A stretch of DNA of 64,000 nucleotides from Anaeramoeba ignava BMAN (taxonomy: Eukaryota; Protista; Anaeramoebae). A program made the translations under genes and the position numbers. The notes under the pieces are model-generated. The model saw only the letters and a program-made list of their open reading frames with translations, did no database searches and was not told the origin of the DNA. The DNA is taken from contig JAPDFW010000123.1 of assembly GCA_028826165.1 (NCBI GenBank), positions 62,001 through 126,000 on the forward strand. The letters are read 5' to 3'. This document shows positions 804 through 21,712 of this stretch, in pieces (the stretch's first letter is position 1; each line of letters starts with the position of its first letter).

Positions 804-3800
804 ATGTCTTCAACAAAAAGAAGTCAATTTTTAATTTGGTTATTTTTGAATGAGATTGAAACAAACAAAATAGAAGAAATTAAAATTCAAATAATAACAC
901 AAAAACCAAAAAAACATTATGAACTTGCAAAATCAAAAAAACAAAAAGAAGTTTGGTTTATTGGAATTCCAAAAATAAATTGGGATAAAAAAAAATATTT
1001 TGAAACTTCTTTTCAATTTGCAATGCATGGATTATTAGAAGGTCAAACAAAAATAAATATGTCAGATCCGTTCCTAATCCAACAATACAAACCAAATCCT
1101 TTGAATATTCAATTTATAAAATTGAATTATGAATCTGATAAATTAATTCCATATAAAGTTGATGATAATTTAATTAAATTTAAAATTCTTGATGCTCTTA
1201 TTTTTCAAACTGAAGGAATTGAATTTCAAAAGCAAATCAAAATCAAATTCCAAGTAATTGATGCCTTATTATTAGGAGAAAAAGAAGAAGAATCAAAAAA
1301 AGAAGAAGAAGAAAAAAAAGAAAAAGTTATTTCATGGATAAAAGAAAATTTTGATTCAAATTTATCTCTTGATAAGAAACTTATTTTTTTCTACTTATCA
1401 TCTTTTGGTTTTCATATTATAAATATGGATCTTATTCTGTTTCCTCAACAAAATGATTCTTTGGATTTTGCTATTGATTTTACAAAATTTGTTATTGATT
1501 TTTTTACAAAAGAAATTGGAGCAAGCACCTTTAAAAAAACTCTTGGTTCAAATCTTTCTAAATTTTTTCAAAAAAATAATCAAAAACAAAATGATCAAGA
1601 AAAATCTTTTAAAATTTTCTCTTATTTCCCATTGGCTTGGTATTTGGAATCTACTAAAGAATTTGAAACTTTTATAAAAGAACTTGAAGTTAAATCTCTT
1701 GATCAAATTTTACCTCTTTTCAATATTATTCTATCTGATTCAACATTCCACAAAATTTTATCTGAAAAATTATTTCAAGAAAAATTCCTTACAGAATGCA
1801 TTCCAAAATATTGGGAAAAATTCCTTTTTGATTTTTTTTCTTCTCAGAATATTGAAAACGTTAACAAAATTTTTGATTCTCCAATTTATAAGGATATCTT
1901 TTCTACACTTTCCCAAATCAATTTAAATTTTGATAAGAAAATTCAATTTTGGATTTCTTTTTATTCTCTTTTAAAGGAGCATCCATTCCAAACAAATGAA
2001 AACACAAATGAATTGAATAGAAAAAATGATCTTGATGATATTTTTAATTTAATCAAATCTCAATTTGAATCCCTTAAAAAGGGACGTTCAGCCTTATTCA
2101 GAATCGTTGCTTTAGCAAAAGAAGAATATATGGGATTAATTCAAAATTTATTATCAGAACACCAAAATATTCTTTACTCCTTTTTCCAATCTCTTTATAA
2201 TGAAATTTCTCTAGATCACATTTTCAAATTTGAGAATATTATTCAATTTATGCCAATAAAAGAGGTTCAAATTCCAAAATGGGAAAAATTATTAACTAAA
2301 ACAAACGAAGATATTTTCAAATTAAAAGATAATAATATTCATGATTTAATTTCTGAATTTATTCAAAATTCAAACTTTCCTGATTTAGAGAATACATTTA
2401 AATGGTATACAAAAATTATTTCTTTTTTTCCTAATTATCAAACAAATGAACATGGAGTTATTGAAGTTATGCAAGATTTTCATAAAGAATTAAATGAATT
2501 TTGTCAAAAACTTGCTGAAGGATGTGAATTTGAGAATTATAACAATTTCCAAACTTTCGAAAAACAATACCAAGAGTTATCCAAAATATTATTTCCAGAT
2601 GATAAAAAATACAATGAAATTATTCAAAAAATTGATTCAAAAAAAACGCAAATATTCTATAAACATGAACTTTTGAAAACCTTATATGATGTTTATTTAC
2701 CCAAAATAATGATAACAGAATTACCTTTTGATGATAAATTAATTGAAAAGATTACAAAAGATCAAGAAGATTCTTTGAAATGGTTGAATAAACTTCAAGA
2801 TTCAAAAATTTTCCTTAATCAATGGAAAGAAATCTTCACTCCATTTTTAAAAGAAAAAATTTTAAAATCTGAATCTCAAATTCAAAATTTTATCAATAAA
2901 TACAAAAATGAATGGAATGATTTTATCCAAAACAAAATCACATTACAAAATTTAATTCAAAACAAAGATAAAGAAACAAAAGAAGAAATCAATAATTTTT
3001 TTCAAAACATTATCAATTTACAATTTATTCAAGATAATATTTTAAAATTATCAAATGAATGGGAAAAATTAAATCAATTAATTTCAGAAAAAAAACTTAC
3101 TTTCAAGGAATTGGATAACATGTTTCCATTTATAGAAAAAGAAACAAACTCGAATATCAATCAAATCAAATTTTTCAAACCTGAAAATTTCTTAAAAGAA
3201 AATCTCAATTTCAAAGATAATGAAAAGAATCTTAATGAATATTTAGAATTGAGGAAAAAAAGATATGGTTTATTAAGTTTCTTGGAATTTTGCAAAATAT
3301 TTACTTTTACAACAAAAAACGAAACATTTGAAACATTTGAAAAAGATTGGGATTCTCAATTATTAAATCAAATTGATGAAATTTCCAAAAATTTAGGTTC
3401 TATATTTTCAGGAAATGAATCATCTTTCTTACAATTCTTTTCTGAATTAATTCCCATTAAATTTACAGAAGAATCTCAAGAATATATTTTTGATACTCAT
3501 TTGCTTGATTGGTTAAAAAAACAAAATGATGATGAAATTAACAATATTCTTTCTAAAGATATTTTCCCTGAAAAACAATACAAAAATGGAATGAAACAAT
3601 TAAAAAATTTGAGAAATAGAATGAAAGGTTATCTTAATCGCGAAAGTTATTCAAGTTTTTCTGTTTTTTTGAATATAATTTTTAATGAAGAAAAGAGAGT
3701 ATCTAAAGATCCAAAAGAAATAGATTTCCCATTTATTCATAAACTTCTCCCACAAATTGAAATTATGATCCAAGAGAAAAACGAAACAGATGAAAAGAAA

Positions 3801-6800
3801 GCAAAAACAGAAATTAATAAAATGTTCAGTGATAAAGGATCCAAATTTGTTTTTAGATCATCAAAAAATCAAAAATCAGCAGTTATTTGTCATTTAGAAA
3901 ATAAAGAAATTTCATTTGATAAATTGAAAATATATTACATACTTTTCAAAAAATTTAAAGAATCAACAGAAGATACAAATCAAAATCAAGAAAATGAAAC
4001 ACAAAATATTTCCAAATTTACAGATTCTTTTGAGATTATTGAGAATTGTGCTGATTTACTTGTTAAACTTACTTTAAAATCTCATTTCGAATACAGTAAA
4101 AATTATGAAAAAGTGTTCCAAAGTATTCCATATGAAAATTTCAAAGAAGATCTTATTGAATTCAAAAACAAACTTGCTGAAGATTTGAGAAAGTGGAAAT
4201 CAACAATTAACAAAATTTTTGAAGATTATGAATCTCTTTCTTTCTTCTCAAAGGAACAAATATCAACATTATTACAAAATTTCAACAATATAAATCCAGA
4301 TTCAAAAGAAAAAATTCAACAAATTTTGAATATTTATTCTCCAGATTTATCTAATGATGAAATAGAAAAATATTTAGATAATCAATCACAACAATTATTT
4401 GAAGATTATGCAAAAGATCTTAATGAATTTTTAGAAAAGAACTTTGATAATTTAGTAAACAATTTTAAGGAAATACCCAAAAATTTTTATGAAAATATCG
4501 AAAAATATGAAAACATAAGAAATTTTATAGATAAACAATTTGATCAAAAATCTGGAAAAGTTTCAAATCCAAAAGTTTGGACATATTCACTTTCAAATGA
4601 ATTTAAAGTTTTTTTCGATGTTTGCATTTTCTATTTCATTTATTCACATAAATTCCCACATCGAGAACAAATTCTCATTTGTGATCAAGATACAACAAAA
4701 AGGGATATTTCATGCTTTTTAAAAGTTTATAAGATTTACAACGAAAAATTTTTAAATGATAAAAATAAAAATGAAAATGGTTGGATATTTTCTATTATTT
4801 ATGGAAATAGATTATCAAAAAACAAGCAAAGTTATTTAGCTTCTGAGATTCGTTCAATTAGTTATCAAACTATTTTCCCCTTGATTATTTTCCATTCAAA
4901 AGAAAAAAAAGAAACAAAAACAAAAACAAAAACAAAAGAATATCCTGATAATTTAGTTTCTTTATTTGGTTCTGAATTTGAAAAACAAGATCCAAAAACC
5001 AAAGTTAAAATTAAAATCAATAATACAGAATTCAAGAAATTTCTTCAAGAAAGTTCATTTTCTAAACAAATGAAAGTTTATACATCAGAATTCTCAGGAT
5101 TTGGTAAAACTTTCCAAATACGTAAATGGGTATATGAAGAAAATAATAAAGAAAATGAAGAACCAAATACAGAATATCAATATAATCATATAGTTATTAC
5201 ATCAGAAAAAAGATCAGAATTTATCCAAAAAATTAATGAACTTTGCCAAAATATAAAAGAAAAAGAAAAAGAAAAAGAAAAAGAAAAAGAAAAAGAAAAA
5301 GAAAAAGAAAAAGAAAAGATATACATACATATTGAGCTTCCTTATTCTTCTAAAATTGATATTTCTGATTATATTTGGGGTCTTTTGATTTGGGGTTCAA
5401 TTGAAAATAAAAGAAGTAATAGTCTTGATAATTCTACATGGAATTTACCAAAAAATGTTACATTGATTTTTGAAATACCAAGTAATCGAATCAACGAATC
5501 ATCAAATGGTTGTCAAAATTTCCCTTCACTTGAATATTTGAATCACGTTGATTGCAAAGTTTCTTATGAGCATTTCTCTTTTGATCAATATATTTTATCC
5601 AATGATGGGAAAATTTCCAAAAAAGAAGACAAAGATTTGATTTCTGTGATAAAATTTTTCCAAATTTATACTGAGAATTTTGAATCATTCAGAAACAAAA
5701 GTGATAAAGAAAGAAATGAATTATTCGTTAATCCCAAAATTGAAGAAAATACGGTTAAAAATATGTTTGAAAAAACTCAAAAAATTTTCAAAGATGTAAT
5801 TAAATGTGATAAAGTCACTTTTAGATTATTCACAAATTTTTTCAATGTTTTAAAATATCAAATTGATGCATTAAAACTTTATGAATTTCTTGATCCAGAA
5901 AAAGCAAGACAATTATTTAAAAACCCAAATTTGGAAAATTACTACAAGAAAAAATTTTGAAATTTTCTTTGGAATCAATTTTCAAAATGATTTCTCCTTC
6001 AGGTAATTGGATGAATAAACAAAATATCGCAAACTCAATTGAATTTGAAGATTTATTTCAAGGTTATAATCCAGAATTTTTATGGGAAGATCGAATAAAA
6101 TATATTTTCTTGTTCATTCTTTCAAAAGAATTTAAAAAAGTAGAAAAAGTATTTATTTTAGGAGAAACTGAAAAATTAGCTAGAAAATGTTTCAATTCTA
6201 CTTGGCACAAAAAACTTGAAGCAAATGATAAATTTACTTTCTTACAACCATTTTCAGAAGAAGCTAAAAAAGATGGATCTCAAAAGGAGTTTCTTGCTTT
6301 AAAATCCTTAATTTTTAATGATATTGATATCTCAGAATTACAACAATTTCATAAAGAAAATAAATCGAATTATGCATTGACAAAAGACAATTTTTTTAAA
6401 ATGATATTTATTCAACAAAAATTAAATGCAAAACTTCCCGTTATTTTATTTGGAGAAACTGGATGTGGAAAAACTTCTTTAATCAAGTATTTATGCGAAG
6501 ATATTATGAAACAACAATTAAGAACTCTTCAAATTCATGGTAAAACTAAGAAGAAAGATATCATTAATTTTGTAAAGGAAGCACAAGAAGACGCAGAAAA
6601 ATCACAAGAAAAAATTCCCATTTTCTTTGATGAATTCAATACAGCTCCCAAAAAATGTATTATGCTTCTTAAAAGCATTTTTTCAGATAAAAGGATAAAC
6701 GATATGAAAATTTCTGATAATATTAATATTTTTGCAGCAGGAAATCCTTATAGAGAAAGAGAAACAAAAACAGGAAATGATACTGAAGCAAGAGATGTAA

Positions 6801-9800
6801 TAATAGATTGGGGATTAAACGCTGATTTTGGTAATGGAAAAGAAGAAATAGAGAGATTAAAAAAAGCAATTTATCCAGTTCACACAATCCCTAATTCTTT
6901 TTTTGATAATATTTTTGATTATGGGAAATTATCAGAAAATTCAGAAGAATCATATATTCAAAAAATTGTGCAAAATAAAATTAAAAAAATAGAACCACTT
7001 CCTCAAGAAGTGGGAAATCTTAATAATTTATTTTCTAAACTTTTATTGGAATCTTATATTTATGTTCGCCAAAAATCAGATGATAAATTAAGTGCAGTTT
7101 CATTAAGAGATTCAACAAAAGTACTTATAATTTTCGATTGGTTTAGATCAGAAAAAATTACTGAAGACTTAATTGAAGAAAAAAGTAATTTTAAATACAT
7201 TCACCAATTTATCATTGCTTTATATCTTTCTTTTGGGTGCAGATTGACCTTGAAAGAAAGAGAGAAATATTATGAATTACTTAAAAAGAAAATTAAAGAA
7301 TTCAAATTACCAAATTTACCAAAATTGAATATACCAAAAATTATTGAAAATTCCCAAACAAAACTTATGGATATTTTGAATATTGATTTTAAAGAATGGG
7401 ATGTTGTATTGAATAACTCTTTGCAAGAAAATATCTTTTCAGTTTTTATTTCTTGTTACACACACATTCCTTTATTTTTAGTTGGTAAACCAGGCACTTC
7501 CAAAACAATTTCAATTGAAATTTTAATGCAAACATTAAGACCTCCAAAAAAAGCTAATAAATTCCTCGTAAATTATAATCTTCCAGCTTTGAAAGAATTC
7601 TTTATTCAATGTACACAACAAACAAAAGCTTCAGAAATAACAGAAGTGTTCAATCAAGCAAGAAAATATGCAAATAAATCAAGCATCACAGAAACTATTA
7701 GTGTTATTGTTCTGGATGAAGTATCTCTTGCAGAAGTAAGTCCTGATCTTCCGTTAACAGTTTTACATTTTGAACTTGAAAAAGCTGATAAAAAATTGTT
7801 GGATCAAAATAAATCATTTGAAAAAATAAAAGAAGAACTTGATGTTTCAGTTTTATTAGTTTCAAATTGGAAATTGGATCCAAGTCAAACAAATCGAGGA
7901 ATGTTTATGAAAAGACTTGATCCTCAATTAGATGAATTGAAATCTACAACAAAAAAAATTCTTCTTCATTTTAAACCAGATTTCCCTTCCAGTTTTGTCA
8001 AAAAAATAGCCAAAGTTTATCAACTTATTTTCAAACGCCAAACAAAAGAATTAAAGAAAAATTATTTTGGACTTAGGGATTTCTATTATTATCTTAAAAT
8101 GATTGGATTTAATTGTTCACAAAACGGTTTTTCTTACAATAACCCACACATGATATGGAATACAATTTATAGAAATTTTGGATCTAGACCTGACTTTCTC
8201 CAAAAAGTTATTCCAGATATTATCAAAATCCTTGGAATTAAAACACCAAAATATATACCATCATCAATCTCACTTATTAAACAAAATTTGTTATGTTCAA
8301 TTGTTGATTTGAAATTATTTCCTGAGAAAAAACTTCCTGAAAACATATTAAAACATCCACAAAATTTTTCTCGACATTTAATGATTCTTACAGAAAATTT
8401 ATCAATTTTACCATTAATACTTTCCCAAATTGAAAAAGACACAATTGTTATTTTTGGTTCTCCATTTGCAGAAAGTAGAAAAACACACAGAATAGTGGAA
8501 AATCTAAAGAAAATTGAATTTGCAGTTTCAAAAGGAAAAACAATCGTTATTTATAATAATAATTATTTGTGTGAAATTCTATATGATTTGCTTAACCAAA
8601 ATTATATACGTGAAAAAGATAAATTATTTGCTCGTATTTCATTTGGAGATGCAACAGAGAATATTTTAATTAACGAAAATTTCAGAGTGATTATGGTTAT
8701 TGATAAGAAACAAGCATACGAAAAGGAATTACCTCCCAATTTAAACAGATTTGAAAAACAATTAGTTTCGGCAAAAGATTTCATTTCTATAAATAAAATC
8801 CATAATTTTGTTAAAAAACAAATTCATAAATTGGATCTAATTGAAGAATACACAGAAGAAAATATCAAAAAAAATGATTTGATTATTAATTATAATTCAG
8901 AAAATAACGATTTATTGAATTCACTTGGAGTAAAATTACAAAACAAATATCAACAAAAAAACGAATTTGATAATGAAATTGAGGAAGAAATACTTGAAAA
9001 GGAAGGCAAAGAATTATGGATGAAACTTTGCAAAACAGAGAAAATGATTCAACTTTTCCATTTAATACAAGAAAACGAAATAGAAAAAGAAAGAAAATAT
9101 TTGAAGCAATTTTGGGATGATTTTATTAAACAATATCATTTTGATTTCAAGAGTTTGTTTCAAGAAGAGATTTCCAAAAAGAATATCAAAAAAAGTATTG
9201 TATTAACATATTCAGTATTTAAAAAACAAAACAAAAAGAATTTCCCAAGAGTTTATAAAGAAAATTCTAATGAAGAAAGTTATTATCCTGAAAATTATGA
9301 TAAACTTTCTGTTGATCTCTCAAAATATCATACAGATAATGAATTGAAAACATATTTATCGGAAAAATGGGAAAAATATATCGATCAAAAAGATTTTGTT
9401 TTAGAAATTCACCATAATATAACTGATGAATCTTCATTTAATTTATTTAATCAAGTTAAATATTTAATAGAAAACTTAATACTAGATTATTACCAGATAG
9501 ATAAAATGATTAATTTAGAAAACAGACATCAAAGTGATATTGTGTTCTTTCTCCATTTAACAAGTACTGAAGCAAGTAAATACTTCTATTATTTCTTTGA
9601 TGATAATTGGGAAATTTATTACATCGATAAATTGAAACAGAAATATGAATTTGATTTAATTAAGATTGCAAATGAAAATTTAAATCTTAAGGATATTTTC
9701 AATAATTTGAAAAATTCAAAATCAAATATTAAAGATTTGATAAATGAAATTACACCAATTGCAATATCACAATTTTTAGATCCTTACAAGTCAAATTATA

Positions 9801-12800
9801 AGGAAAAGCTTGATTCGATTTCTAATTTACTAAAAAATGATGAAATTCAAGAAATTGTTTTAGAAAATGTTGAAAATATGATTGACAAAGGACAAGAAAA
9901 AGAATTTGAAATTTATAAATGGGATTTGAAAGAAATTATTAAAAATCACAAGGGAAATACTTCTATTATTGATCATTCATTTAATACTTTCCGTGAAAAA
10001 ATTACCAGAATTTTTGCCTTAATAATTAACAAATTAAGCCAAAATGGAAATTATAATCTTTTCAAAGAAACTGGAATTATTCATTATTTATGGTCTCGAA
10101 TTATAAAAGAATATAAAATTCCGTATGATAACGTTTTTGATAAAGATCAATTTCACAATTCTGAATTTTTCTTTCCTCATCTATTCCTCTATTCAAAATA
10201 CACACTCATATTCAAAAGACTCTTTCATTTATAAACTCATAAATGTTCCATTTAGTAAAATCCAAGAATTAAATGAAAATATTTCAGAGAAACAAAATAT
10301 TCGAGATATTTCTATTAAATATTTTAATGATTTAATGAAATTTGAACTTGGAGAAAAAAAAGAACAATTATTGAAAGAAGGAATTAAATTTGATTATATT
10401 GATCTATTTGAAAAGTTTTCAAAACAAAATATTATTGATATTTCATTGAAAGATCTTCATAAAATCTTTTTACAAACAGTAAAACCTATTTTACACAAAA
10501 TATTATCAATCAAAGATTCATTCGATTTATTATCAAAGAAAGAATATTCTCAAATTGAACTTGATAAATCAAAAAATCTTTTCTCCCTCTTTTCAAATTA
10601 TTTCAATATTTTGGAAAAACTTATTAAAGAAAAAGAAAAAGAAAAAGAAAAAGATATCCAAAAAATTGCATCTACTTTTATATCACACTCAAAACAAAAT
10701 GTTCAAGATTTATTTTTAGATTTGAAATTAATTAAAATTTCAGAATCAGAAAATGATCAATTACCTAATTTAATTTCTAAATGGAATGAAATTTTACTTT
10801 TAAGAGAAATATTTGTTGAAGTTCATTTTCCATTTCAAGAAAATCAATACATTGATACTATTCTTAAAGAAATTAAACCACATTTCAATTCTGAATCTAA
10901 TTTAGATGAAATATTTAATATATTTTGGATTAAACTTCCTAAACAATTATTAATTCAACAAAAAGTTCAAGATAATAATCAAATTTTAGATCAAATTTCA
11001 CAAGATGAAGCATTTAAAAACAAGAAAGAAGTTTATAAATCAATTATATTCATTTTTTATAATTTTGGTAAAATTCTTGTTCAACACATGATAAATGATA
11101 CTTCAAAAATTAATCAAATTGAAGAAATTTACAAGAAAATAATTTCCATTTTAATTGGGGAAGATAAAGATTTACCTAAATTAGATTTTGAAACAGAAGA
11201 ATCTAAGTTTTTTAATTTCATGTTAAATTCATTAATTCGTGATTTGATTTTAAATTCTCAAAAAGATTTGAAAAACCAAAAAATTTACTTTAATATTTTA
11301 GATGAGTTTTTGAAAGAAGTTGATTTAACAGAAGAAAATATTAATAATCAAATTGGAATTTCATGTTTAAAAATTTTGTTAAATCGAAATGAAATTAATT
11401 TAAAAATTAATGATGATAATAATGATAATAATGATAATAATGATAATAATGATAATAATGATAATAACGATAATGATAACGATAATGATAATAATAATGA
11501 TAATAATGATAATAATAATAATGATAATGATAATAATGATAATGAAAGTGAATATGAATATTATAGTTCTGATTATTTAAATGAAGATAAATTACAACCT
11601 CTTCCAGAAAAATTTTCATTAAAAGAAATTAATAATTTAGCAAATTTCAGAACATATTTAATTTATAATTATAAAAAAGCTGTGAAAGATATGGAGAAAG
11701 ATTTCAAATCAGAGAAAGATGCAAGAAATTGGGTTATTTTGATACTAAAATCTATTTATCATAAATACAAACAAAACAAAGTTATTAAATTTATAGAGAA
11801 AAATAATCAACATTTACCAAGTAATTTGAATTTGATTAAGAATATTCGAAAATTAAAACCTGAGATTCCAAAATTTAGAATTAATAATGGAAAAGTATCA
11901 AATACAATATTAGATAACAACACAAACAAAATTATAAAAACAATCAAAAATGATCAAATTGTTCAAGCAATATTTGATTCAGTTGATATTGTTGAATCAA
12001 TAAACTTTCAACCGTTTAAGGATTTGATTTCTGATCCAATGTTTTTGAAAGAAAACCGAAAAACATCCAATTTGATAAATATAATTCATAAATCATATTG
12101 GCCTGGTATTCCAAATTATCCTTATTTCAATATGTTTCTCAATCAAAGTAACCAATGGTTTGGATGTGAAGCTCATAATACTTTTTGGTATTCTGACAAA
12201 AATCAAAATCAATATCAAATGGATTGTTGGTATTGTAATTTACCTTCTGATATGTCAATCATGATTCCACAACCAAAACTTATTAAAGAAATTGATCAAA
12301 AACTTCAAAATTTATCAGGTTATCATTGTTCAGTTCCAGAATTTGATACATTTAATATTCGTGAATTAGATCCAATATCTTATTTAATTTTAGTTATTCT
12401 TACAAATTGCATTGTTCTTAGTATGAGTATTTCAGTAATAAATTTCAGAGAAAATATCCTTCATTTAATGAACTCACCAAAAACAAATGAAGAAGAGTTA
12501 TATAAAATTCTGAAAAATAATATTGTTAGATCCTTTGATAATTTGAAAGAAATTTTGAATTTATCAGATCAAGAAGTTTTTGAATTTTATTACAAAATTT
12601 TAATTAAAATGAAAGAAGGAAAATATATAAAAGGAATACAATCTCAAACTATTAATCTTCAAAAGGAAGAAAAAAGAAATGAAATTGAGAAAAATTTCAA
12701 TGAAATGATTAAAAACGAAAAAGATGGAATTTTAAAAGAAATTCGTAAAAACAGAAAACGAGATGTATTTGTTGATTTAGAAGAAAGGAAACTTCCTTGG

Positions 12801-13883
12801 CCTTTTATGGAATATCAAACAAAAAATTATCAACAATTTGTTTGCCTATTCAAAAGTAATGAAGAAAATAAGAAAAAGTATCCAATAATTTCATTTGTGA
12901 ATGAAAATCAACAAGCATTATCAAGACTTAAACTCTTTCCAGGATTTCTTAAATTTGCTTCAGCTATTACAAACAGATATCATGGAGAATTTTCACAAAG
13001 AAAAACAAAAATAATTAATTTTATTGAAGAAAACAAAGAAAACAAAGAAATTGAAGAATGGTTTCAAGATTTTAAATCTTTATGGAATGATTCATTAAAT
13101 GATTTGAAGAAAATAGAAATTTACACAAACTTACCACAAGATTTCTTCACAAAAAATGTTATGAACGAACAAAAATCAATTGAAGAATGTTTGATTTATA
13201 ATAAAGAATCACCTGTTTCAATTTACAAAATTATCAAAACTTCAATTAAACATCATAATAATTTAATGAAAAAATTAATGGAAATTTTAAATTTCTCAAG
13301 TTATCAAAAATCTAATCAAGAAGAAAAAGAAAAACTTCATTTTCCTATTAATATCCAAGAATTTGAATCACCAAAAATTATCCATTTAGATTTTGATAAA
13401 ATTACTCAAATTATTAATGATTATCAAGATGATCAAAAATTATTTGCATTTTTAGAAGAATATTTAATTGAAAGCTTAAATATTGAATTTAAATCAAAAG
13501 AAATTTTACTTGAATTTGAACATTTCTTTTTCAATGATGATATTAACGAAAGAGTTAAAAGATTAAATAAAAGAGTTTGGAAATATGAAGCAATACCTGA
13601 TAAAATATGGGAAACAATTCTTGAAGAATTAAAATTAAAAAATTCAGTTGAAACTTTTTTCAATTTAATTAAAACAGTTATTTTTTCATGTTCTTTAACT
13701 GAATTTAAAGAAGTTGAATTACAAGACATTCCAAATACTCGTTTAATGGATTTTATTGATAAAAAACTTTCTTTAGAAAATGATCCAGATTTTCTTTTTT
13801 TCCAAAATTCCTCAAAATATTTTTCATTAATATTTTTAAAGAATATTTCAGATTTATATGAGAAACTTAAGAAAGAAATTTAA
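804..13883 (+). CDS. RNF213/mysterin-like giant AAA+ ATPase (~4,350 aa), intronless, broken into three ORFs by two frameshifts (~5950 and ~10170)
   Basis: RNF213-type motifs occur in order: SGFGKT, PVILFGETGCGKT + FFDEFNT, AVSLRD, PLFLVGKPGTSKT + VLDEVSLAEVSPDLPLTVLH, SNWKLDPSQTNRG, FGLRDFY, LYDLLNQNY, NRFEKQ, an RZ-like C..H..CxxC, and RELDPISYLIL. The three ORFs abut or overlap with no intergenic gap. Confidence 0.85.
11409..11545 (+). repeat. Coding GAT/AAT trinucleotide repeat (Asp/Asn tract) in the RNF213-like gene
   Basis: (aat/gat)n, translated as NDDNNDNNDNN... Confidence 0.9.
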
Positions 13884-14221: not shown

Positions 14222-17200
14222 ATGTCAAATTTTAATAATCCAAAAAATTTAGGATTTCGTGTTGCTAAAGATATTTTAGAAGAACAAAAAAATAAATCAA
14301 ATTCATTTCCAAAAAATCCAAAACCTTTAAATTTAAAAGATTTACAAAAAAAAAAACCACATCTTCAAAAAGTTTTTCGACCAAATGAATTTTTTCAAAA
14401 ACGTTCTGAAAAATCAAAATCAAAATTTTCAAAAGAATCAAAATTAAATTTAGATTCAAATACAAATACAAATTCAAATTCAAATATAAATTCAAATTTA
14501 GATTTAGATTTAGATACAAATACAAATACAAATCTAAATTCAAATTCAAATTCAATTACAAATTTAGATTTAAATACAAATACAAATACAAATCTAAATT
14601 CAATTACAAATTTAAATACAAATTTAGATTTAAAATTCAATACCTTTTCCATTTTAAATACAAATACAAATTTAGATTCAAATTCAAATTCAAATACAAA
14701 TTTAGATTTAAAATTCAATACCTTTTCCATTTTAAATTCAAATACAAATACAAATTTAAATACAAATTTAGAATTAAATACAAATTCAAATTCAAATTTA
14801 GATTTAAATTCAAATTCAAATTCAAATTCAAATTCAAATTCAAATTCAAATACAAATTCAAATACAAATTCAAATTCAAATTTAGATTTAAATTCAAATT
14901 CAAATTCAAATTCAAATTTAGAATTAAATTCAAATTTAGATTTAAATACAAATTCAAATTCAAATACAAATTCAAATTCAAATTCAAATTCAAATTCAAA
15001 TTTAGATTTAAATACAAATACAAATACAAATCTAAATTCAAATACAAATACAAATTTAGAATTAAATACAAATTCAAATACAAATTTAGATTTAAATACA
15101 AATTTATTTCTCCAAAATTTTCAATTTCCTTCAAACAATTTTTCTAATCCAAAAAACTTAGAAATTCAAAAAAAAGAAGATCATCAAATTTCAAAAAAAC
15201 CAATCAATAGTAAATTTGTAGAAATTTCCATTAATTCCTTCGCTAATCAAAACCCACAAAATCAATTTCAAAATAATCAAAATCAAACACAAAATCAATT
15301 TAAAAATCAAAATCAATTTAAAAATCAAACACAAAATCAATTTCAAAATCAAACACAAAATCAAAATCAAAATAATCAAAATCAAAATCAAAATCAAAAT
15401 CAAAATCAAAATCAATTTCAAAATCAAAATCAAAATCAAAATCAAAATCAATTTCAAACACAAAATCAAAATATTCAATTTCAAATTTATCCAAATTTGC
15501 ATTCAAATCAATTAGAAAATCAACATTTAAATCAAAATCAATTTCAAAATAATCAATTCCAAAATAATCAATTTCAAAAGGAAAAAGAAAAAGAAAAAGA
15601 AAATGATATTAACCAAAATTATCCCAATGAAAACCAAAATCAAGATGATGAAGAACCAAATTTTTTTAAGCTTTCAGAAAATAAACATTTTTTGGAAAAT
15701 AAGCCTTTTGAATCAAGTCAAATTTATTCTAATAAATCAAATCCTAAAACTGATGAAGAAATTCAAGAAGAACAAAATAATCCAAAACTTGATCAATGGT
15801 TATCAAAAAATCCCACAAATCAAAATCATTTTAAATCAAGAAAAACGGAAATGGAAATTGAAAAACAAAGTGAAAATGAAAATACACCAATAAGACAAAC
15901 TGAATCAAAATCACCCCAATCAAATAGTAGTGGGAAAAGAAGATCAAATCGAACAAGTCCAAACTCTAAAGAAGATTCACCCATATTTAAAATATTTCAA
16001 AATACAACAACCTAAAAAAATTGAAGATCCAGATTCAAATCAATTAGAAAATCAAAATCAATTAGAAAATCAAAATCAAAATCAAAATCAAAATCAAAAT
16101 CAAAATCAAAATCAAAATCAATTAGAAAATCAAAATCAAAATAATCAAAATCAAAATCAAAATCAAAATCAAAATCAAAATCAAAATCAAAATCAAAATC
16201 AAAATCAAAATCAAAATCAAAATCAAAATCAAATCCAAAATAATCAAAATCAATTTCAAAAAAATCAATTTCAAAATAATCAAAATAGAAATCCAAAAAT
16301 TTTCACAAATTTATTTGAAAATGATGTAGATGAAAATGAATTTGAAAATGAAAATCAAAACAATCATAATTATAATCATAATGAAAAAAATTATGAGAAA
16401 CAAAATATTTCAACAACTCATGAAATTTGTTTTAAAAAACTGGAAAAATGGATTTATCCGATTAATAAATCCAAGAGAATGTATCAATATAACATATCCA
16501 AAACAGCTTTATTTTACAATACATTGGTTGTTTTACCAACAGGACTTGGGAAAACATTGATTGCAGCAGTTGTTATGTATAATTATTATCGATGGTTTCC
16601 AAATGGAAAGATTATTTTTATGGCGCCAACAAAAGCGCTTGTTACACAACAAAAAAAGGCAATATATCAAACTGTAGGAATACCAATGGAAATTACTGTT
16701 GAAATGACTGGAGATACCAGTCCACAACAAAGAGAAATATTGTGGAAAACCAAAAGAGTTTTTTTTGGAACTCCACAATCTTTCCAAAATGATTTGAAGA
16801 AGGAAAATTGTCCGATCGATTCAATAGTGTGCTTGATTGTTGATGAAGCGCATCATAGTGTTGGGAAATATGCATACAATATTGTATTTAGCTTGATTCA
16901 ACAGAAGAATAAAAATTTTCGAGTTGTTGCATTATCAGCAACACCAGGTTCTAATGTTCAAAAAATTCAGACGATTATTGATAATTTAGCAATTTGCAAA
17001 ATTGAATCAAGAAGCGCGGACAATGGAGATGTTTCACCTTATGTTCATGAAAAGAAATTTATTCGAGAAATTGTTTCTCTTCAAAATCACAACGAAATTG
17101 TTATCATTTCCAAACTTTTCACACCTATTGTTGAGAATTTCTTAAACCTTTTGTTCACTTCAAATGTTCTTCCCAAAAAGCATATAAATCAATTATCAAT

Positions 17201-20200
17201 CCTTACTTTCAAAATGTTCTCCCAAAAACTCCAAATGACTAAAATGGATCTAAATCAAAAAAGAGTTCCCGATTTAAGAGTTGGACAATTGATTGCAAGA
17301 TTTGGATTCTGCATGAGTTTGCTTCATGCCTGGAAATTACTTCATTTTTATGGATTGAAGACATTCTCGCAGTTTATTCATTCCCATTTTATTGATCCTG
17401 AAAAGAAGAAAAAAACATCTAGTCTTCTTTTAAAACAAGAAAACTTCAAAAAAATACAAGAAATTATCCCAGATTTGATTCAACAAGCTAAATCTTCACA
17501 TCCAAAAATTGATTTGTTAATGAATTTAATCGCACAGCATTTTGAGGAGCAAAAGAAACAAGGAATTGATTCTTTTAATCAAACAAGAGCAATTGTTTTT
17601 TCCACTTTCCGAGATTCTGTCGAGGAAATTGCAGAAAATCTTCGTAAAATTGATCTTGTGAAAGTGGCAGTTTTTATTGGACAAAATACATCAAAAAATA
17701 AAAAGGGATACAATTCAAAACAGCAGAAAAGCACAATATCCCAATTTAGACAAGGAAATTTCAACACTCTCGTTTCAACATCTGTTCATCCTGATGAGTT
17801 TATTATTTTAATGAATCCCAAATCAGAAATTATGATCCAAAAAATTGGGCATTTCGTGGAGTTTTTCCTTCATAAACAAAAGGGATTCGCAAAGAAGAAT
17901 ATTTCCAATCAACATTGGAAATGTCTTTCTTGTGATAAATATGGTGAAAATGTAGGATTTTATCCTATCACACATGTCCATCGTCATGTAAGACAAAATC
18001 GAGTTTTGGAAGTCAGTTTAACAAATGGGTTTTCTGCTCTTGTAACTGAAGATCATAGTTTATTCACTTGTTCTCAAACCAAATCACACAAAATTAAACT
18101 TCAAAAAACTAAACCTCAAATCAATCAAATGATCAATTTCTGTTCTTCTTTTTCTATTTCTTCTTCTTCTTCTTCTTATTGTAAAATACATCGTATTGAT
18201 TTAATTGAACAATTTTTCAACAATTCTTCTCAGAATAACCTCAAAACTCCAAAATATTTCCAAAAGGCAATCCATAACTCAAAATTTATCATTGTTTATT
18301 CGAGCACAATTTGTTCACATGAATTTTCTTTTGATTTAAAATTACAATTACACATTATTCAAGCTTTGCAAAACAAAAATTTTTATGTTTTGGAGCAATA
18401 TCCTCAAGACCAAATTAATCAAATTCAACAAGGATTGAAATTATTTACAAAATCATCTTTCTTTGATAAAAATCTTTTTCATTTTGAAAAGGAAGATTTA
18501 GAAAAATATTATTTGGATTGTTACAGAAAATCTATTATTTGGATTGAAAATCATTCAATATTTAATCCTCAAACAAAACATTTTGAAAGTAACTTGGAAA
18601 ATGCAGCAACTTTTCCAGAAGAAATGATTTTCTTTTTCAAACAAAGAATATATTTAAACAACATGAAATATCAAGATTATTTACCAAGATTTATCAAATT
18701 AGATCATTTCTTTCTCAATTTACTTGCATTCTATTTATTTTCATCAACACAAAAATTACCAAATTCTACATTTAGTTATCAAAGGATAAATGATGATTTC
18801 AATTCAATTAATAGTTATTTCCAAAAAAATGAAATTATTTTATCGCATTTATTTTCAACTTTTCTTTATTGTGGAACAGTTAATTCCAAGAAAAGAATTC
18901 CCAACCTCATTTTCAATTTATGTTTTGGAGATCAACTTTATTTTTTGGAAAAATGCAAACACTTCACAAAAATTCAATATCAAACAACAAAATATGATTT
19001 TATTGTTGAAAGTAGAGAATTAATGATGGGAATCATATTTCTCAGTAAACAAATTTATAAAGAAAACATAATCAATCTTTCCAGAATTTCTGAAGAAAAA
19101 ATTTATTCTCAAAACACAAATCAAAATATTTCTTGTTCAAAATCCAGTTTTTATTGTTGTTCATTGGAAACAAAGGAATCATCCAAAAAAGAAACTTTTT
19201 TTTCAAATTTGGAAACAATTTGTGAAGTTGATTCTCAACCTGAATTTGTTTATGATATTTCTGTTCAAAAAACACAAAAATTTTTTGGGGGATTAGGATT
19301 AGTCAATCTTCACAATTCAGTTGGAGAAGAAGGACTTGATATTGGAGAAGTTGATTTAATTATTTGTTATGATTCTTCTGTAGATGTCACAAGAATGTCA
19401 CAAAGATTTGGAAGAACTGCTCGAAAAAAAGCAGGAAAAGTTGTAGTTTTCATTACAGAAAGTTTTGAAGAAGAATCTTTTGAAAAAATATTGAAGAAAG
19501 AAACTGATATTTTACAAAGATTATCACGAACAAAATTTCGACTTTCCAAAAATATTCCTGAATTATTTCCAAATCAAACTAATCCAAAATGTGTTGAAAA
19601 AAAACTAGAAATTATTCCCTATTTTGAAGGAAATGAAGAGACTGAAGTTAGGAGCAAAATACCAACAAAAGTAGAACTTGAATTATGCGAAAGATCAGTT
19701 CAATTACCAAAACAAAGATGGAACTATTCTCTTGAAAAATATATTCCAGATCAAAATTTGACATTTTCTTCTCATATTGGAAATTCAACTCAAACAAAAT
19801 TATTAGTTGATGTTTTAATTTATTTGGATCAATTTCCAAGAAAAATTCCTTTGGAAATACTTTCTAAACCTTTGTCATCTTCTCTTTCTCCTATGAAAGT
19901 TAATGAAAAAAATGAAGAAACTGATGTTTCTTTTAAGTTAGGAACTCCTAAGTCAAAGAATATGAAACAATCTCCATTAAGAAAAACAAAATCAAACTCA
20001 AAATCAAAATTAAATTCAAAATTAACATTTACACCAGTCGATTCACAAGAAAATATTCAAAAATCTAATAAAAAAATAGAAAGTAAATGGGAAGTTTCAA
20101 AAATTAATCCTATGGAAAATTCAGATACAACTTTAGATCTAAATCCAGATATAGATATCAATACAAATCTAACTACAAATCTAACTACAAATTTAGATTC

Positions 20201-21712
20201 AGATTTAAATCAAAAAAATTCTTCATATTTTGGAAAATCATTTAAAGATCATGATCTAAAACTTCAAATGTTATTGAAACAAAAAGGAATAACCACAAAT
20301 ATTAATGGTGAATATTTAATTAAATCACTTAAACTCCTTGGTGATCCAAGTACTCGAAAAGATATTGTTGATCTTTGTATTCATTTATATCCAGAGATTT
20401 GGGATTGTTACCAGAAAAGTTTTCCAAAGAAATTAAGTCGAATTAAATTTGAAAAATTAATTATTCCAGAAAATTTTTCAAAATATGGTGTTTATCAAAA
20501 TCCTCGTTCATTTGAATTTTCTCTTAAAGATTTAAATCAAGAAAATGGAAATAATTTTAATCAAGAAAATGGAAATAATTTTAATCAAGAAAATGAAAAT
20601 ATTTTAAATCAAGAAAATGGAAATATTTTAAATCAAGAAAATGAAAATATTTTTAATCAAGAAAAAGAAAATAATTTTAATCAAGAAAATGGAAATAATT
20701 TTAATCAAGAAAATGAAAATATTTTAAATCAAGAAAATGGAAATATTTTAAATCAAGAAAATGGAAATATTTTTAAATCAAGAAAATGAAAATATTTTAA
20801 ATCAAGAAAATGGAAATAATTTTAATATTAAATTGAATCTTTCAAATGTTTTATCTCAAATTACTCCAATAAAAAATAATCAAAAAATACAAATATTAGA
20901 AAATCAAGAAGAAAAAACAAATCAATCTAAAGATGATTCAAAAAATCAAGAAAAAGAAACAAATAAAACATAAAAATAAACATAAACATAAAAATAAGCA
21001 TAAACATAAACATAAACATAAACATAAACATAAACATAAACATAAACATCACAAAAAACGTAAGAAAGATTCAGATGAAATCCAAAATGATACTAAAAAA
21101 ATTAAGAAAAATAAAACTAAAAAACCATCACAAACTTCTATTTCAGAATCAAATCAAACAATCCAAATTCCTCAAGAAGGAATTTCTCATTATTTTTTAC
21201 CCAATAATAATGAATCTAAAATAACAAATCAAAAAGAATTTTTAGTTCAACTTATAAATAAAAAAGAAATTTCAATTCAATTTAAAAATCAAAATCAAAA
21301 TCAAAATCAAAATCAAAATCAAAATCAAAATCAAAATCAAAATCAAAATCAAAATCAAAATCAAAATCAAAATCAAAATCAAAATCAAAATCAAAAACAA
21401 AATCAAAATCAAAATCAAAATCAAAATCAAAATCAAAATCAAAATCAAAATCAAAATCAAAATCAAAATCAAAATCAAAATCAAAATCAAAATCAAAATC
21501 AAAATCAAAATCAAATTGATCAAAAAAAATTATTTTCATTATTACTTGATTTTAAATTCCCAAAAACTCAAGAAAAAAAACAAATTCCAAAAAAATCAAA
21601 AAAATTTGAAAAAATCAAAAAAAAATCTTTATTAATTACAGATTATTTTCCAATTAGTAAACCTCCAATTTTAGAAATTTTATCACAAAAAGAAGAACAA
21701 GATCAATTTTAA
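14222..21712 (+). CDS. FANCM: FANCM/Mph1/Hef-family DEAH DNA helicase containing an intein; low-complexity N- and C-termini; frameshifts near 16000, 20770 and 20950
   Basis: [21 protein letters not shown] (motif I), [20 protein letters not shown] (II), ALSATPG (III), [13 protein letters not shown] (IV), NTLVST|[19 protein letters not shown] (V, split by the intein) and QRFGRTAR (VI). No ERCC4 nuclease domain was recognised. Joining the 14222, 20761 and 20933 ORFs is inferred. Confidence 0.9.
17781..19316 (+). mobile_element. Intein (512 aa) with degenerate LAGLIDADG homing endonuclease, inserted in helicase motif V
   Basis: In-frame 1536-nt insert. Block [14 protein letters not shown] (Ser1), block [17 protein letters not shown] (TxxH), block [16 protein letters not shown], block G LVNLHN followed by Ser+1. 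Removing it restores [17 protein letters not shown]. Confidence 0.96.
20533..20826 (+). repeat. Coding 27-bp minisatellite ([16 protein letters not shown] units)
   Basis: About 11 tandem copies of aatcaagaaaatg(g/a)aaata(a/t)ttt(t/a). One copy has an extra T that shifts the frame. Confidence 0.9.
21288..21514 (+). repeat. Coding (AATCAA)n hexamer repeat, poly-NQ
   Basis: Near-perfect tandem aatcaa. The same repeat occurs at 15350-15450 and 16070-16235. Confidence 0.95.

Follow-up and report, generated by a model that had tools for sequence, protein, structure and literature searches.

What is a 512-codon insert doing in the middle of a conserved catalytic motif of a eukaryotic repair helicase, where did it come from, and can it still move? 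These questions are raised by a gene in the 64,000-nucleotide stretch of DNA that we analysed from the protist Anaeramoeba ignava BMAN (contig JAPDFW010000123.1, positions 62,001 to 126,000 of the forward strand; hereafter the window, in whose own numbering coordinates are given), a helicase gene of the FANCM type whose motif V is split in frame. To judge by its sequence, the insert is a real class-1 intein of the type found in archaeal Hef helicases, and it is very likely translated together with FANCM, self-excising, and by now fixed and immobile.

The insert begins with a Ser1 codon, TCT, that starts at 17781, ends with a terminal Asn codon, AAT, that closes at 19316, and constitutes residues 618-1129 of a 1619-codon frame on the plus strand (15930-20789), its two junctions reading ...NTLVST / SVHPDE...NLHN / SVGEEG in the translated frame. 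An in-frame insert of this length in motif V had been described in an initial annotation made from the letters of the DNA, and on re-translation both its coordinates and its flanks proved exact. Taken alone, the insert scored 39.9 bits against the Pfam profile Intein_splicing (PF14890), passing the curated cut-off of 35.8 bits in the profile check which that annotation had proposed, and it cut the Helicase_C profile of the host into two stretches, with profile positions 74-109 resuming at residue 2 of the C-extein (the part of the host that follows the intein).

When the insert was aligned with 11 homologs, the 12 inteins were homologous from end to end and had 39 invariant columns, including Ser1, T89, H92, D492, H511 and N512, and the Ser+1 nucleophile that follows the intein was likewise conserved. 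T89 and H92 form the TxxH of block B (VTEDHS), D492 belongs to block F (FVYDISV), and block G ends in LHN (H511-N512). The class-1 splicing residues that the initial annotation had listed (Ser1, TEDH, VYDISV, the penultimate His, the terminal Asn and Ser+1) are therefore all present and kept across the alignment. Splicing would proceed by an N-O acyl shift at Ser1, transesterification to Ser+1, cyclisation of Asn512 aided by His511 and a final O-N shift; translated within FANCM, the intein would thereby excise itself and rejoin motif V as ...LVST + SVGEEGLD...

The predicted fold of the insert points in the same direction. An AlphaFold2 (AF2) model reached a predicted local distance difference test (pLDDT) value of ~85-90 over residues 1-90, in the N-terminal splicing (Hint) part, and a Foldseek search with the model returned inteins for all of its top matches, first among them PI-PkoII (2cw7; 1.2e-16), the second intein of the Thermococcus kodakarensis DNA polymerase, and also PI-PfuI, mini-inteins and 4e2t. 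The profile of the 12-intein alignment likewise matched PI-PkoII over its full length (1-530 against 1-537, E 7e-57), whereas the window sequence on its own matched it weakly (E 0.019, over the C-terminal 34 residues). PI-PkoII differs from the window intein in its host, a family B DNA polymerase, in its insertion site and in having an active endonuclease.

We then turn to the host, whose N- and C-exteins were searched separately, not as one joined sequence. The N-extein matched the Pfam domains DEAD (3.4e-25) and ResIII (3.4e-23); among solved structures it matched FANCM (9el5) at E 5.5e-101, Pyrococcus Hef at 1.6e-54 and RIG-I at ~1e-12, and its top database matches were the FANCM proteins of A. 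flamelloides, fungi, animals, plants and amoebae, at ~40% identity. Helicase motifs I, II (DEAH), III, V and VI are intact in the window protein. No Pfam match to an ERCC4 / HhH module was found in it, this module being also missing from the A. flamelloides and several of the fungal FANCM matches, and by its domain content the window helicase is a FANCM of the short, Mph1/Fml1-like type.

In a tree of helicase lobe 1 and the helical insert (quick search, SH-aLRT supports), the window protein grouped with a second FANCM of the same genome, described below, at 98, this pair was sister to the two FANCMs of A. flamelloides at 96, and the whole stood apart from archaeal Hef at 100. Since the window FANCM lies inside the eukaryotic clade and is parted from Hef at full support, the host is, by its place in the tree, a vertically inherited eukaryotic FANCM and not an archaeal Hef, and what is archaeal in type is limited to its intein. 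The eukaryotic nuclear FANCM/Mph1 host named in the initial annotation was thus borne out twice, by the preference for FANCM over Hef among the structures and by the tree. With motif V split as it is, one may reasonably expect the function of the helicase to depend on splicing. The coordinates of the gene and of the parts of the intein are collected in Table 1.

Table 1. Position of the intein, its parts, its exteins and the adjoining open reading frame (ORF) in the window.
Feature	Position	Strand	Description
597-codon ORF	14222-16015	+	N/S/T/Q-rich low complexity; frame differs from the helicase frame
N-extein	15930-17780	+	Low-complexity linker, lobe 1 (PTGLGKT, DEAH, SATP), helical insert, lobe 2 to motif V Thr
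Intein insert	17781-19316	+	512 codons in frame; splits helicase motif V between its T and its S
Intein N-terminal splicing (Hint) part, residues 1-112	17781-18116	+	Block A Ser1 SVHPDE; block B T89/H92 at 18045-18056
Intein middle, residues 113-470	18117-19190	+	Decayed winged-helix DNA-recognition and LAGLIDADG region; Ser run, private insertion
Intein C-terminal splicing part, residues 471-512	19191-19316	+	Blocks F and G; aligns to mini-intein C-termini 5o9i, 2cw7
C-extein	19317-20789	+	Ser+1, rest of motif V, motif VI QRFGRTAR, poorly conserved tail with terminal low-complexity repeats

If the host is eukaryotic, where are the relatives of its intein? A whole-library search with the insert gave ~10 relatives at E<1e-10 (P0001-P0003 were found by a word-index search), and the best archaeal members matched the window intein at E 4e-27 to 1e-19. 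The proteins P0001-P0003, P0005-P0010 and P0012 are Hef-type helicases with a DEAD domain, a helical bundle and Helicase_C, as determined by whole-protein Pfam scans for all but P0006 and P0009; ERCC4 was present in six of the archaeal hosts, and HhH where the sequence was complete. Most of the archaeal relatives matched both Intein_splicing and LAGLIDADG_3, and the insertion point was [TS]/S...HN/S[VI][GA]EEG in all family members. The bins that carry the family belong to Woesearchaeota, Micrarchaeota, Diapherotrites, Pacearchaeota, Nanoarchaeia and Methanosarcinales.

Archaeal Hef inteins at motif V (for example those of P0001, P0005, P0007, P0008 and P0010) share with the window intein the insertion point, Ser1, Ser+1 and blocks A, B, F and G, and are homologous to it from end to end, with 25-29% identity overall and 44-51% in the Hint parts. 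They differ in having retained the MarR-like winged helix and both acids of an intact LAGLIDADG_3, which the protist copies have lost, and in that their hosts have an ERCC4 nuclease and HhH tail that the protist hosts do not. Literature searches on inteins with FANCM or Hef found no paper describing this archaeal Hef motif V family. A more distant related intein, at the same motif V position, lies in a superfamily 2 (SF2) helicase (ResIII/DEAD/Helicase_C) of a viral 126-kb IMG/VR contig (L059, 1765-4737); its junctions read ...LVGT / SLDHNE...CHN / SLADEG..., LAGLIDADG_3 is present in it, and viruses are a possible vector for the family. Two of the database proteins carry more than one intein: the archaeal, Hef-like P0012 has one within DEAD and a second at motif V, and P0004 (2008 aa, a PF00437-type ATPase) has several, with C-terminal blocks resembling those of the motif V family.

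The second FANCM of A. ignava lies on contig C73 of the same genome (locus L037, 1294-7893), where a 2199-codon frame shows 43% identity to the N-extein of the window. It too is interrupted by an intein, of 507 residues (L037 4414-5934), at the identical motif V site (...NTLVST / SVHPDE...NIHN / SVGEEG), and this intein scored 44.4 bits against PF14890. Only these two strong FANCMs came out of the genome search with the N-extein, the weaker matches resembling low-complexity matches; no third, intein-free FANCM turned up in that one search, which was not aimed at intein-free copies. Both FANCMs of A. flamelloides (P0054 and P0084) have an uninterrupted motif V, without an intein. In the intein tree the window and paralog inteins were sisters at support 99, and a deletion of ~50 columns relative to the archaeal inteins is common to both. 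In the simplest history, extein and intein were duplicated together after the A. ignava lineage had acquired the intein once (or the A. flamelloides lineage had lost it).

The paralogs might instead not have been duplicated with the intein in place, the intein having homed from one into the other while its endonuclease was active, or having been acquired by each separately. Transfer between paralogs has been described for the MCM, DNA polymerase and Msh inteins of Anaeramoeba (PMC10710043), and the two FANCM proteins have their inteins at exactly the same site, but we consider such a course unlikely. Divergence is greater between the two inteins than between their exteins (identity 32% versus 46%; a path of 3.2 versus 1.3 substitutions per site), and therefore any transfer between the paralogs was not recent relative to the duplication; in addition, the common deletion and the common loss of the endonuclease acids, described next, fit one ancestor that was already decaying.

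Can the intein still move? Between the window and paralog inteins, identity was 62% in the N-terminal Hint part (residues 1-112), 20% in the middle (113-470) and 62% in the C-terminal Hint part (471-512); between the window intein and the archaeal ones the values were 44%, ~19% and 51%, and between pairs of archaeal inteins 46%, 44% and 60%. The Glu of the first LAGLIDADG motif, found as VSEG in 10/10 archaeal inteins, has given way to Ser in the window copy and to Tyr in that of the paralog, and the Asp of the second motif (GDG), also kept in 10/10 archaeal inteins, is lost in both A. ignava copies, of which the window copy retains motif remnants at 18714-18758 and 18939-18989. No LAGLIDADG or winged-helix (MarR) Pfam match was obtained at E<=1 for either A. 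ignava intein, while the archaeal intein of P0001 matched LAGLIDADG_3 at 5.5e-10 and MarR at 3e-9. An active homing endonuclease is ruled out by the loss of both catalytic acids together with the missing Pfam match, and these changes indicate that the window intein is most likely immobile today. Since the Hint parts were conserved while the middle decayed, selection appears to have kept splicing and abandoned homing; an intein fixed in a needed gene would be expected to end up in this way, its endonuclease decayed and its splicing retained.

These results also bear on two suggestions of the initial annotation. It had placed the element inside its own mobility machinery, given the role of FANCM/Mph1 in the repair pathway that intein homing uses, yet the endonuclease is without both catalytic acids and without a Pfam match, and its decay therefore leaves no basis for an element that exploits FANCM for mobility; replication and repair hosts are reported to be the rule for inteins generally (PMC10710043). 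The other suggestion, a conditional switch, was drawn by analogy with the RadA intein of Pyrococcus horikoshii and found no support here. That intein (4e2t) is likewise a class-1 intein in a recombination protein, and its Hint fold is among the structural matches of our model, but it is a mini-intein in another host and at another site.

We propose that the donor belonged to a family of large, PI-PkoII-related inteins with a winged helix and a LAGLIDADG endonuclease, seated in motif V of Hef, mainly in DPANN and other uncultured archaea. The intein would have reached the A. ignava lineage, with or without a virus as carrier, by homing into the conserved stretch that codes for motif V, later than the split from A. 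flamelloides and earlier than the lineage-specific duplication of FANCM, which would have left an intein in both paralogs. Since then, decay would have overtaken the endonuclease and DNA-recognition parts of both copies, with selection still acting on the parts needed for splicing, and the present intein would be a fixed, immobile passenger with self-excision as its only maintained activity.

Several points weigh against this account. The direction of transfer from archaea to protist is read from the distribution of the family, in which the endonuclease is intact in many archaeal lineages and decayed in the single eukaryotic species. In the intein tree, the branch that leads to the window intein is long. 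The supports of the host tree come from the quick search, as the careful tree search was unfinished, and the mean pLDDT of the intein model is a mediocre 61. Retention of the insert in the mRNA and the actual splicing of the protein are deduced from the sequence. Finally, the window copy could be impaired by a possible frameshift near its 5' end, within 15894-16015.

This last point follows from the structure of the gene upstream of the helicase core. In the helicase frame no ATG precedes the start of the conserved core (WIYP...R.YQ), and the 597-codon ORF that lies before it in a different frame probably encodes the N-terminal part of this FANCM. Over 15894-16015 both frames are open (an overlap of ~120 nt), and a one-base indel in this overlap would fuse them into ~2190 codons, near the 2199 aa of the paralog. 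For an intron joining the ORF to the helicase frame there was no convincing candidate, as none of the 38 frame-restoring GT..AG pairs is AT-rich like the introns of A. ignava. The 5' end may thus reflect an indel in the assembly, a genuine frameshift or an unusual intron. Further upstream of the FANCM gene lie three consecutive long plus-strand frames, of 1718, 1425 and 1252 codons (window 804-13883).

A frame-shifted 5' end is also what one might expect if the insert were a dead, non-splicing remnant and the window gene, perhaps with its paralog, were non-functional or neo-functionalised and carried a permanent insertion of 512 residues; the decayed and partly low-complexity middle of the intein would agree with this. 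We nevertheless regard it as very unlikely, as both copies, ~32% identical overall, retain the splicing residues and the 39 columns that are invariant in the family, and conservation is ~three times higher in the Hint parts than in the middle, a pattern that marks selection for splicing. The helicase motifs are moreover intact in an unbroken 1619-codon frame, and the two FANCMs are the only strong matches found in the genome.

It is hardly credible that the insert is a spliceosomal intron, removed from the transcript and leaving no intein at the protein level, even though the introns of A. ignava number >30,000 (10.64898/2026.04.11.717937). The chance of 512 stop-free codons is ~1e-19, given the insert's own base composition, and the remaining five frames of the insert hold 22-44 stops; within 45 nt of the two junctions there is no GT..AG pair that preserves the frame, and on the open frame and this junction scan the intron reading was rejected. 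The insert is also 74% A+T, against ~92% for A. ignava introns (PMC11550330) and in a genome of 80.65% A+T (PMC11550330), and its full-length protein homology is to inteins. Just as remote is the chance that the whole gene is a laterally acquired archaeal Hef, or the contig a contaminant: the close relatives of the intein all reside in archaeal Hef, but whole-gene transfer is rejected by the extein tree, in which the exteins go with A. flamelloides and other eukaryotic FANCMs and off Hef, the best PDB match is FANCM, the window has a G+C content of 21.7% with N/Q-rich low complexity of host type within the same frame, and ERCC4/HhH is missing.

How, then, does a translated, self-excising and immobile FANCM intein compare with what is already described for this organism? 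The 2023 survey of A. ignava BMAN (Gallot-Lavallee et al., PNAS) reported 103 inteins in 79 exteins and 49 KOGs, with a maximum length of 550 aa (PMC10710043). It presents A. ignava as the most intein-rich eukaryote known, with most inteins in replication, recombination and repair proteins and many of them allelic to prokaryotic ones (PMC10710043), and for other Anaeramoeba hosts it describes prokaryotic allelic counterparts, loss of the endonuclease in old inteins, co-duplication and differences between two species (PMC10710043). The FANCM intein has in common with the catalogued ones a nuclear category L gene, a conserved catalytic motif, an archaeal counterpart at the homologous site and a lost endonuclease. 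FANCM, Mph1 and Hef are not named in the main text of the survey (PMC10710043). Both FANCM inteins are likely to be in its catalogue already, and it is doubtful that the FANCM allele, the paralog and the kinship with an undescribed motif V family of DPANN Hef (and a viral SF2 helicase) all fall outside it.

A six-frame scan of the 42.8-Mb, 147-contig assembly gave at least 38 PF14890 matches, in places several per open frame, a lower bound given that the window's own intein was missed by the scan; the loci include C71:176938-177976, C106:80258-82434 and others on C93 and C12. We also observed an intein of ~350 residues in Prp8 domain IV (contig C98:203036-204775; L056 1501-3246), with the junctions ...LAKWK / CLGK...THN / TAEE... 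These junctions are those of the Prp8-f site (AKWK/TAEE, in the RNase H domain), which has been reported as novel, and only for A. ignava BMAN (PMC10710043).

The FANCM intein is a sound observation and an ordinary member of the published A. ignava set. It adds detail to a published phenomenon and opens no new class of biology, and what is new in this analysis is the paralog with the same intein, the empty sites of A. flamelloides and the decay of the endonuclease and DNA-recognition parts. Should it prove not to be catalogued, no intein would have been documented in a eukaryotic FANCM before it. If the proposed history is right, it would represent a clean case of cross-domain homing into the orthologous Hef/FANCM site, followed by fixation, duplication and endonuclease decay, and FANCM function would depend on splicing, no intein-free copy having been found. 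As the case history of a single Anaeramoeba intein it is well resolved, with a donor-type family, an orthologous host and empty sister sites. Both FANCM copies found in A. ignava would depend on protein splicing, and they constitute a convenient natural substrate for testing Ser1/Ser+1 intein splicing in a eukaryotic repair helicase.

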